Shown: positions 21,533 to 25,503 of the stretch, one piece after another | Position numbering within the stretch: position 1 is the first letter of the stretch | Layout of the letters: every line of letters starts with the position of its first letter | Assembly: GCA_964247055.1 (NCBI GenBank) | Contig: OZ176050.1 | Location: 5,704,001-5,768,000 of the forward strand | DNA: 64,000 bases | From: Paragordius varius | Taxonomy: Eukaryota; Animalia; Nematomorpha | Direction of reading: 5' to 3' | Translations under genes and position numbers: made by a program | Notes under the pieces: model-generated | The model's database searches: none | What the model saw: only the letters and a program-made list of their open reading frames with translations | What the model was told of the DNA's origin: nothing

Positions 21533-24500
21533 ATGTTCCTTCGATATCATGCTTTTAAGGTAACAATTTTTTTTAATTTAAGTTATATTGTGGCAAAATC
21601 AAAAATATAAGATGTTACAGTGTAGCAAGACAAGTCATAACAAAATATAAATTTAGATGACTGTTCGGGATGCCCTAAATAGTGCGATGGATGAGGAAAT
21701 GCAGAAAGACGAGCGGGTTTTTCTTATGGGAGAAGAAGTAGCTTTGTATGATGGTGCTTATAAAGTATCTCGAAATTTGTGGAAAAAGTTTGGCGACAAA
21801 AGAGTTATTGATACACCGATAACAGAGGTTTTGTTGCATAATTTTATATTCAATAAAATTATTTTTAGATGGGCTTTGCAGGTATAGCTGTCGGAGCTGC
21901 TATGGTATAGATTTTGTTTTAATTTAAGGCTGGTTTGCGTCCCATATGTGAGTTCATGACATTTAATTTTGCCATGCAAGCCATAGACCAAGTATTAATC
22001 ATTTATGATTTTTATTATATATATATATATATATATATATATATATATATATATATATATATATATATTTTAACAATTTGAATTATAGGGTAAAATTCAA
22101 ATGTCCAATTACTCTAAAACAAAATTCTTTCTAGTTTGTCATATCCAAATGTCTATTTATAACAATTACACTCTTAATCCTAATTTAGGTTTTAAACGCT
22201 AACAATTAAATTTTTTTTATAGATTAAGTTTATTGTCTTTTATCAATATTGTTTTCTTTTGTTTTTAGTTAATTTATTGAAAGAAATACCACCATGTCTC
22301 GAATATTTTGGATACAGTATAGTTTTGTAAAATAGATTGTGAATTCGGCCGCTAAAAGTCATTACATGAGTGCAGGCATGGTTAAAGTTCCCATCGTTTT
22401 TCGCGGTCCTAATGGGCCAGCCGCCGGAGTTGCAGCACAACATTCACAATGTTACAGTTCTTGGTATAGCAATGTTCCAGGTATATCTTTTTTATAGTTA
22501 TCAGCAACAGACTAATAAAATTTATACAGCATGCACAATAAAGTTGTTTATTCACATCGTTTTTGTTCAATTGGCAATACAGTAGCGTATGGGTAAAAAC
22601 AATAAATAGTTTAAATTACAGATTTTCCTATCTTACAACGTTAAATTTTATGTAATTATTGAAGAAATTTGTTATATGTCATACACTAATTTATTATCAA
22701 ATGCCCAACATGTGTCAATTGACCAACATTAATGTGAATGCTGTAATGTAAATGCGGATCTGCTAGAATTTAATAAATTCATTGACAACATGAATCCAAA
22801 TTAAAATATTATAGTGAGTAAAGTTAATTAATATAACTTTTTTCTATAATTACGGAGTCATTATGCACGTCAACTATCAACTCTACTAGTTGTGTTGTAT
22901 TGATGTAGGTTAACAATCTCAAAACTTATACAATTACTATGAAAGATGATCGCATATTATCTGCGTCATATCAAAATATTTTAAGTGAAAATTAAAATAA
23001 ATATTTTTTTGAAAAAAACAATACGTTTTTAAGTTAATAGTTTCCATTTTTATCCCTATTTCGCCAACTAAAACGACAGGTTATACTAAAAATTAAGGTT
23101 TAAAAGAATGGATGTCTTTTTCAAATAAATATTTGTCTAAATTCAGGTTTTGGGAATTTATTTTGCATACTATAATTCACTTTTTTTGCTGAATCTATAA
23201 TATACAGGTATGTACGTTATTGCACCCTATTCATCTCGTGACGCACGCGGTTTACTTAAAACAGCTATTCGAGACAATAACCCAGGTAAATATAACATTT
23301 TGAAGTTTATTTAAATATATTATTTTTTTGAGTTTTTAGAATATTTTTGTATGTTGTATAAGGGGTAGTTCTTATCAATATTTAATTCTGTGATGAGTAT
23401 TCTATACACTATTTTTTGGGTAAATATAAAAGTCTTTTTTTAAAGTTATAAAAGAACTTGATTTATATTATTGTTCATTAAAAAAACATAGATGTACGCT
23501 AACATTCTTTCAATTTATACTATAATTACAACTTAATTGCCTATTTAGTTGTATTTTTGGAGAATGAATTATTGTATGGAACTTCGTTTGAAATGAGTGA
23601 GGAAAGCCTATCTCCCGATTTCACCATACCCATTGGTAAAGCCAAATGTGAACGACCAGGTTATTTACATTTGTTTTATTTTTTTACCACTACTAATTTT
23701 AAATTGATTTTCCACTAATATTTTACTAGTGTATTTCACATTGTTTTACGCTGGGGTGGCCAACACGCGGCCCAAATTTGAAAGCTACTAAACAAATTGG
23801 AAAATTCTATTATTCTTGAAATAAATTCTATTAAAATAAATTTTAGAAAAAAATGATATTTTCTAAAAAATTTGAACTTTCTTAATTTTAATTAACTAGC
23901 AAAATACGGTAAATTATATATTTTTTGTGTACTCAATATTTTTACGTCATATATTCGAAATTTAATGAAAAGAGAGCCTATGGGCACCTCTCTTTCAGCG
24001 CATAACATTTGTGATATATTATATCACAAAAGGTAACTAAAATAGTATATTTTTGGGACAGATTATTAATTATTATGCTCAAAAATATAGTTGAAATTTT
24101 TAGCATACCCTAGATGGGTTTAATGCATAAAGAATTGTCTTGGGGATTTTATTTCTGTTCTTAGACAATAATGGATATCTACTACAATGGTTATACAAAA
24201 ATAAAATTGCCTATGGAATCAAGAATTTTTTATATGTGCCACATATACAATAACATTTTATTCATTTAAATGTTTAATTACTATATTTTTAAACAGGCAA
24301 TCATGTTACCTTAGTTGCGTTTTCGAAGGCTGTTGAAGTTTGTTTGGATGCTGCCGAAAGACTTGCTTCCGAAAACATAAGTTGTGAGGTTTATTTATTC
24401 ATTATTTATTATTGGTTGATAATAAAATTATTTTTTGCCTTGATTTTTTATATTACGATTGTGATTATTGACTTTTCTTTTATATTATATGTGCGTATTC

Positions 24501-25503
24501 AATAAAAAATGTTGTTATTTAAGTTCTATCATAAAATTAAAAAATATAAATGGAAAGTCCCAAATGTTTGTCGTTTTCACATATCGATTATATTTATTTC
24601 CAGTAGAAATATAATCTGTATATTGAATTAAATTACATTGATTTGAATCATACAACGATAGTGTGATCATATCATTTTCTGTGTTCACAATAATAAGTTT
24701 TACAGTATTCACATTGTTGGTGGCCGATTGGTAATACATTGGCCTGGGTTATAATATAAATTTTGTGCATAATTAAATAAACAAATTTATTTTGTTAGAT
24801 TGAAAAATTGTAAATTTTACTTTCTGTTGTTTTTACCCATAAACTATTGTGTTGTCAATTTTCCAAAAAATAATGTAAATTGGCCAACATACTGTATTTT
24901 TATTAAGAAAAGATCATGATGCGTATAATGATCCATGTATTTTTCCCAAAATCGCGTTCGTTAGGGGGTAGAATAATGTAATTAGTCAACATATTGCATA
25001 TGGTCATTAATAATAATAAAACCGTTTTTAATATTTAAAAAATAAACAATTTACACAATTATCGTTAAAGTTTTTTGGTTTATTAATTACCCATTTCTTA
25101 GGTAATCAATTTACGGACACTTAGACCGCTCGATATACAAACTGTTATGGAATCTGTATTGAAGACACATCGCCTCATAACATGCGAAATCGCTTTTCCT
25201 CAGTGTGGCATAGGGGCCGAAATATCAGCACAAATTTGTGAAAGTACCCATTTTTCCTTTGAATATTTTCAGAATGCTATTTAAAGCACCTTTTCTTTTT
25301 TTTAATTTTTTATGTTAAAAATATTTTTATAATGCTCTTTATAAATTATTTTAGGTCCGGTGTTCAATTATCTAGATGCTCCAATTATCCGACTCACAAA
25401 TGTTGATGTGCCCTTGCCTTATGCCAAAAATTTGGAGGCCAAAGCCCAACCACAATCCCAAGATGTTATTGAGGCAGTTAAAAAATCTTTAAATATCAAA
25501 TAA
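21533..25503 (+). CDS. PDHB: Pyruvate dehydrogenase E1 beta subunit, mitochondrial (11 exons)
   Basis: Exons 21533-21559, 21583-21633, 21657-21827, 21869-21904, 21929-21991, 22336-22480, 23208-23285, 23549-23659, 24297-24388, 25102-25243 and 25355-25503 splice in frame. Motifs: [15 protein letters not shown]...[39 protein letters not shown]...[19 protein letters not shown]...[12 protein letters not shown]. Confidence 0.97.
22016..22068. repeat. (TA)n microsatellite in PDHB intron 5
   Basis: About 26 uninterrupted TA dinucleotides. Confidence 0.95.

Follow-up and report, generated by a model that had tools for sequence, protein, structure and literature searches.

Introns of 23-24 nt lie near gene starts in a 64-kb window of the hairworm Paragordius varius

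The Window and Its Genes

The window analysed here is a stretch of 64,000 nucleotides (nt) from the hairworm Paragordius varius (phylum Nematomorpha; assembly GCA_964247055.1, contig OZ176050.1, positions 5,704,001 to 5,768,000), and the subject is the order of short and long introns along its genes, above all PDHB and SMARCC. Introns of only 23-24 nt can be found in these two genes and, within this window, the class is confined to the neighborhood of the start codon.

The genes are ordinary animal genes, namely a collagen-like gene, TMEM129, a Shaker/Kv1 channel gene, PDHB, a small Pcc1/LAGE3-like gene, SMARCC, two tandem paralogues of the SLC7 amino-acid transporters (SLC7-A and SLC7-B) and the start of SRPK. 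The window has 23-33% G+C, and intra-window repeat makes up 19% of it. This composition and repeat load are consistent with the assembly report of Gordionus montsenyensis (26.93% GC, 63.8% repeats, mainly DNA transposons, BUSCO 71.6%), a report in which the word "intron" is nowhere used. Exons were compared singly with Pfam and with protein references, and joined reading frames were compared with other loci by local tblastn. All intron statistics refer to 45 introns of this window, a doubtful 24-nt candidate in TMEM129 being left out. Coordinates are those of the window, and an intron "at +27" starts 27 nt from the ATG.

The PDHB Gene

The features of PDHB are the following.

21533-25503, + strand: PDHB gene, ATG at 21533, stop at 25503, 11 coding exons, 354 amino acids
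21560-21582, + strand: intron 1, 23 nt, at +27, GT-AG, TA at -9/-8
21634-21656, + strand: intron 2, 23 nt, at +101, GT-AG, TA at -9/-8
21828-21868, + strand: intron 3, 41 nt, at +295, demanded by Pfam continuity
21905-21928, + strand: intron 4, 24 nt, at +372, demanded by Pfam continuity
21992-22335, + strand: intron 5, 344 nt, at +459, the first long one, with a (TA)n run
22481-23207, + strand: intron 6, 727 nt, with a high-copy repeat inside
23286-23548, + strand: intron 7, 263 nt
23660-24296, + strand: intron 8, 637 nt
24389-25101, + strand: intron 9, 713 nt, with a repeat copy inside
25244-25354, + strand: intron 10, 111 nt

The lengths that a preliminary description of the window had given for this gene (23, 23, 41, 24, 344, 727, 263, 637, 713 and 111 nt) are exact; all ten introns have GT-AG ends, and taking them out yields a single open frame of 354 residues. 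Very short introns give way to long ones over about 90 nt, +372 being the start of the last short one and +459 that of the first long one.

Introns 3 to 10 are fixed by homology because the Pfam coordinates abut across exons. Transket_pyr is matched over positions 3-57 by exon 3, 88-134 by exon 6 and 136-162 by exon 7, and exons 4 (12 residues) and 5 (21 residues) together supply 33 amino acids that bridge positions 58-87. Transketolase_C is matched over 11-39 by exon 9, 40-86 by exon 10 and 88-124 by exon 11. Upstream of these domains, intron 2 lies directly 5' of the exon that encodes MTVRD, with an in-frame TAG stop directly ahead of exon 3. Intron 1 lies in the presequence, where splicing it out joins a leader resembling a mitochondrial targeting sequence; it follows from open-reading-frame logic only.

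Two of the short introns occupy positions that are also used in other animals, there with introns of 60-175 nt. A 21.7-kb contig (L002; 28% GC, from an AT-rich animal) carries PDHB at 3300-5280, with a 68-nt intron at the position of intron 2 and a 175-nt intron at exactly that of intron 4. The latter, in phase 0 between AM and AGLRP, is shared with introns in two further animal contigs (L005 and L007), all three contigs being unrelated to the window, while intron 3, whose own sequence includes AATAAA, has no counterpart in L002. Since other animals use the same positions, at least two of the very short introns are old introns that shrank, not new insertions. The introns of PDHB in L002 measure about 62-343 nt and lack 5' polarity; two of its intron positions are common to both genes, and its similarity to the PDHB of the window is no higher than that of arthropod-like PDHB genes. 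The best matches of the PDHB exons in protein collections (P0027 and P0028) are compact genes of unrelated animals, and L002 stands no nearer to the window than these do.

The SMARCC Gene

A second gene displays the same order of introns.

29217-29240, + strand: SMARCC intron 1, 24 nt, at +96 from the ATG at 29121
29361-29383, + strand: SMARCC intron 2, 23 nt, at +240; reference alignments are interrupted there, with matching spacing
29470-29492, + strand: SMARCC intron 3, 23 nt, at +349
29870-29989, + strand: SMARCC intron 4, 120 nt, at +749
30063-30403, + strand: SMARCC intron 5, 341 nt

The lengths previously put forward for these introns (24, 23, 23, 120 and 341 nt) hold, the first three by comparison with reference proteins and the third also by Pfam, and all five have GT-AG ends. 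At intron 1, two references (P0012 and P0017) are gapped at exactly that point, and the unspliced reading contains stops. At intron 3, SWIRM-assoc_2 continues without a break from positions 76-101 on exon 3 to 104-134 on exon 4. The combination of 24, 23 and 23 nt is the sole one that is collinear with full-length SMARCC references. A search of the whole protein library with exon 4 gave a top match of 42% identity. After intron 5, every gap between anchored exons is at least 290 nt.

Further along the gene, the SWIRM domain has an insertion of 11 residues at about 33002-33034 (+ strand) relative to two full-length reference proteins. A hidden in-frame micro-intron was considered for this insertion and rejected, as no fitting GT-AG candidate was found.

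A Class of Micro-Introns and Its Position Along Genes

Three size classes of GT-AG introns can be distinguished in the window: micro-introns of 23-24 nt, short introns of about 55-120 nt, and long introns of 240-1,800 nt, some of which contain repeat copies. Six micro-introns are solid (PDHB introns 1, 2 and 4; SMARCC introns 1-3), with starts at +27, +96, +101, +240, +349 and +372, which bears out the preliminary statement that all introns of 22-24 nt start within about 400 nt of the ATG. All six have a G+C content of 8-22%, a GTa-like 5' end, a T-rich 3' end of the form TTTAG or TTAAG, and a TA at -9/-8 from the 3' end. Judged from these letters, the TA would most simply contain the A of a branch site kept at a constant distance. 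That these introns are spliced is predicted from homology.

Introns below 30 nt account for seven of the 45 (the six of 23-24 nt and one of 29 nt), in a window whose median intron is a few hundred nt long. Of the 8 introns less than 400 nt from the ATG, 6 measure at most 30 nt, as does 1 of the 37 further away (Fisher p ~2e-5); with the threshold at 41 nt, the counts become 7 of 8 and 1 of 37. When intron order is shuffled within genes, the permutation p across the 45 introns is ~2e-4. A 5' zone of about 400-450 nt thus holds all the introns of 23-24 nt and none longer than 74 nt.

It might be argued that this distribution is a sampling accident or an artefact of gene models, micro-introns being more readily "found" where N-termini are poorly conserved, and few genes being involved. 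The solid cases do come from PDHB and SMARCC only, intron 1 of PDHB stands on reading-frame logic alone, and the doubtful 24-nt case in TMEM129 resembles just such an artefact. Against this, five of the six solid micro-introns lie in conserved sequence, where they are fixed by Pfam or by reference alignments. A scan for the motif (starting GT, length 22-25 nt overall, TA at -9/-8, closing AG, A+T of 75% or more) gave 54 matches over the two strands of the window, with a single one in the 11.2 kb of modelled exons, that one also in a 5' zone. With the permutation result added, an artefact or accident appears highly improbable.

Every one of the six solid micro-introns, if retained, gives a frameshift or an in-frame stop. 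This would suit a regulatory device in which 5' micro-introns are kept for the control of expression, either through exon-junction complexes that aid export and translation or through retention leading to a premature stop. Moreover, for intron-mediated enhancement to operate, the intron must lie no more than about 1 kb from the start. However, chance alone should produce in-frame stops in sequence so rich in A+T, and a regulatory role accounts for the keeping of introns, not for a length of 23-24 nt nor for long introns downstream. Such a device is therefore considered an unlikely cause of the layout.

Excision at the DNA level, as in ciliates, was also considered and rejected: the ends are GT-AG and not TA-TA, and two of the positions are ancient intron positions.

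Genes With a Different Layout

The remaining genes show how far the rule extends. The features that matter here are listed below.

9066-9089, - strand: TMEM129, candidate 24-nt intron, doubtful
7968-8319, - strand: TMEM129, intron of 352 nt, confirmed
6190-7807, - strand: TMEM129, intron of 1618 nt, confirmed
43004-43032, - strand: SLC7-A, internal intron of 29 nt, at +2614, demanded by a change of frame
62154-62227, + strand: SRPK intron 1, 74 nt, at +331, within the 5' zone but not a micro-intron

For TMEM129, the introns of 352 and 1618 nt described earlier are upheld, whereas the 24-nt intron placed ahead of them is doubtful: its G+C content is 38% (8-22% in the others), TA is absent from -9/-8, and an in-frame ATG at 9062 provides a normal start without it. 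The last intron, given as 469 nt in the preliminary description, is ambiguous between 418 and 634 nt. In exon 1 of the same gene, a 24-nt stretch at 8843-8866 (- strand), about 200 nt from the start, is in frame, free of stops and a match to the micro-intron motif; treated here as coding, it could be subject to optional splicing.

SLC7-A (41396-45646, - strand) and SLC7-B (52334-55992, - strand) are paralogues about 10 kb apart with all eight intron positions in common. Their introns measure, in order, about 1008, 107, 657, 29, 465, 55, 74 and 321 nt in SLC7-A and about 704, 89, 73, 72, 71, 79, 572 and 346 nt in SLC7-B. In both, the first exon is 560-720 nt long, there is no micro-intron, the longest intron comes first and introns of 29-89 nt occur further on. 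At the codon where SLC7-A has its 29-nt intron, SLC7-B has one of 72 nt. Sizes at shared positions have diverged in the pair (29 versus 72 nt; 657 versus 73 nt), which is a natural system for studying the shrinkage and growth of introns.

Since SLC7-A and SLC7-B have the longest intron first and introns of 29-89 nt downstream, the polarity is not general: confinement to the 5' end holds only for the class of 23-24 nt, and "short first, long later" is not a rule of these genes at large. The earlier picture of tiny introns at the 5' end and long ones downstream consequently stands for PDHB and SMARCC and, as to long introns downstream, for TMEM129, but fails for the SLC7 pair. The two exceptions that it had admitted, the 74-nt first intron of SRPK and the 29-nt intron of SLC7-A, are real. 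First introns are the longest as a general eukaryotic rule, a point said to have been made by Bradnam and Korf in 2008; SLC7-A (1008 nt) and SLC7-B (704 nt) conform to it, whereas PDHB and SMARCC reverse it where an intron lies about 400 nt or less from the ATG.

The Shaker gene has one intron, of 243 nt, at +1658; its open reading frame had no exact match in the protein collections. Within its coding exon, the Rfam family K_chan_RES (potassium-channel RNA editing signal, RF00485) is matched over its full model at 18277-18390 (+ strand) with 84 bits, and the match suggests that the hairpin for A-to-I editing of Kv1 is conserved in this gene. TMEM129 and Shaker are separated by a stretch devoid of genes; there, at 11646-12118 (- strand), open reading frames carry a reverse-transcriptase-like YADD motif and are probably the remnant of a retroelement.

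Transposon Copies and the 5' Zone

An element resembling miniature inverted-repeat transposable elements (MITE-like), about 580 nt long and with the inverted sub-terminal motif TACCCCAATTTGAAT, is present in eight copies in the window; 11 matches to this motif were observed against 0.6 expected.

20888-21484, strand unassigned: MITE-like copy upstream of PDHB, its end 49 nt from the ATG
28582-29070, strand unassigned: MITE-like copy upstream of SMARCC, its end 51 nt from the ATG
9469-10046, 20151-20737, 28023-28592, 47945-48333, 50843-51307 and 56839-57381: other MITE-like copies

The spacings of 49 and 51 nt to the ATGs of two unrelated genes are nearly equal, as if the element targeted promoters or its end supplied promoter sequence.

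Repeat copies also occur inside long introns, namely in introns 6 and 9 of PDHB and intron 1 of SLC7-A, as well as in stretches of the SMARCC gene. In PDHB, intra-window repeat covers 22560-22670 of intron 6, where the depth of a DNA run in the bin 22476-22622 is about 20 times that of neighboring bins, and 24758-24869 of intron 9, where depth is raised in the bin 24681-24827; over both introns, the increase is about 9- to 25-fold. No intra-window repeat was found in the 5' zone of any gene of the window.

The last contrast would fit a mutational or chromatin cause, in which the first 400 nt or so lie in germline-open chromatin that is barred to transposons or prone to deletion, so that introns there shrink and never grow. 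However, the MITE-like copies upstream of PDHB and SMARCC stop 49 and 51 nt short of the ATGs, and DNA transposons generally favor open chromatin. Promoters are thus not barred to insertion and, since insertion reaches the promoter region, the repeat-free transcribed zone must be kept clean by selection. A purely mutational or chromatin-based origin thus has a low probability. The same copies split the interpretation offered in the preliminary description: a start-proximal zone of compact introns stands, while the exclusion of transposon insertion does not.

Selection of another kind might act against premature termination. In a genome of 73% A+T, long introns would bring many poly(A) hexamers, and near the promoter these would terminate transcription too soon; long introns would then be purged from that region, leaving minimal ones, and tolerated downstream. 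On the sense strand, AATAAA/ATTAAA occurs at 6.0 per kb in long introns and at 1.6 per kb in 5' zones; both lineages with this layout are AT-rich, and promoter-proximal poly(A) sites are efficiently used in mammals. Nevertheless, the gap in hexamer density is what coding versus intronic composition yields, the 41-nt intron of PDHB itself has AATAAA, and the SLC7-A and SLC7-B genes place first introns of 700-1,000 nt just 560-720 nt from the ATG. The tight size of 23-24 nt is also left unexplained. Avoidance of premature termination, while slightly better placed than the regulatory and the mutational accounts, is still improbable as the source of the pattern.

A Proposed Link Between Splicing and the Transcript 5' End

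The mechanism that most likely lies behind the observed layout would combine deletion with a position-dependent tolerance. Deletion would shrink introns everywhere along genes, and a floor of 23-24 nt would be tolerated solely close to the transcript 5' end, where assembly of the spliceosome across the intron may be aided by the cap-binding complex, by RNA polymerase II in its early phase and by promoter-proximal chromatin. An intron at this floor would be locked, any insertion destroying it, so that selection would keep the zone free of transposons; downstream introns would remain at or above 55 nt and be free for inflation by transposons. The start-proximal layout is probably genome-wide in the lineage, and it may be of the same kind as that of the small 5' introns of Schistosoma mansoni. 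Taken as a whole, this explanation, i.e., a shrunken micro class confined to the 5' end, present genome-wide and spliced with assistance from the 5' end, is judged the best available and somewhat favored by the evidence.

A stricter form can be proposed, in which the spliceosome has a position-dependent mode: introns of 23-24 nt could be recognised and removed only if they lie no more than about 450 nt from the cap, their removal being coupled to early transcription, and the flatworm layout would be convergent. If true, the profile of intron lengths along a gene would directly report a promoter-proximal splicing window. We consider this form rather unlikely, albeit less so than any of the alternatives weighed above.

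Several observations weigh against splicing assisted by the 5' end. The whole signal comes from PDHB and SMARCC, the only genes to supply solid micro-introns. The 29-nt intron of SLC7-A lies at 2.6 kb, so that a position near the 5' end is not a strict requirement for very short introns, and this weakens a little the reading that only compact introns are spliced near the start. The effect of the cap is classically one on the first intron only, and PDHB has four small introns in series. Distances were counted from the ATG and not from the start of transcription. Finally, three small runs presumed to be RNA (19-30 million letters) gave no contig over PDHB.

Comparison With Other Animals

The usual lower limit for animal introns is 30 nt, and the small introns of schistosomes measure about 26-50 nt. 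We know of no published mechanism for small introns near gene starts, either in schistosomes or here. For S. mansoni, Protasio et al. (2012; PMC3254664), citing Berriman et al. (2009), state that small introns cluster in about the first four exons of many genes, with larger ones after, and that these small introns are overlooked by transcript assemblers. As in S. mansoni, small introns in the window are concentrated among the first exons, in a genome that is AT-rich and transposon-rich; large introns follow in PDHB, SMARCC and TMEM129, but SLC7-A and SLC7-B have introns of 29-89 nt downstream. Unlike in S. mansoni, the phylum is Nematomorpha and not the flatworms, and the class measures 23-24 nt.

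Among 51 genomes, introns below 30 nt were found only in myxobolid Myxozoa and in Dicyema, no hairworm being named in the text (Hadjez et al., 2026; PMC13644364). The ultra-short introns of myxobolid Myxozoa and Dicyema japonicum are GT-AG introns of 22-27 nt (Hadjez et al., 2026). Those of the window resemble them in a 5' signal cut down to about GTa, in conserved A residues set a fixed short distance 5' of the AG and in the occupancy of ancient intron positions. Several differences are nonetheless apparent. Myxobolid Myxozoa and Dicyema have compact genomes whose median intron is ultra-short, with no polarity from start to end reported, whereas the micro class here is a minority found at gene starts, and the genome around it is rich in repeats and has introns of kilobase length. 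In addition, the 3' end here retains a T-rich signal resembling TTTAG. The window thus seems to combine a known layout with a known extreme of size, in a lineage where neither appears to have been published.

Significance

Common gene finders and spliced aligners set a minimum intron near 30-40 nt. Tools with such a minimum would break the first exons of genes built like PDHB and SMARCC, and the hairworm BUSCO value of 71.6%, together with claims of gene loss, could partly reflect annotation artefacts.

With regard to the biology of the group, the lineage of this animal would be the second, unrelated one with small introns near gene starts, in a sharper form than in the first. It would also be the third animal lineage with introns below 30 nt, and the first in which these stand alongside kilobase introns filled with transposons. 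The layout makes it possible to test what sets the minimal length of an intron, and whether competence for splicing depends on distance from the 5' end.

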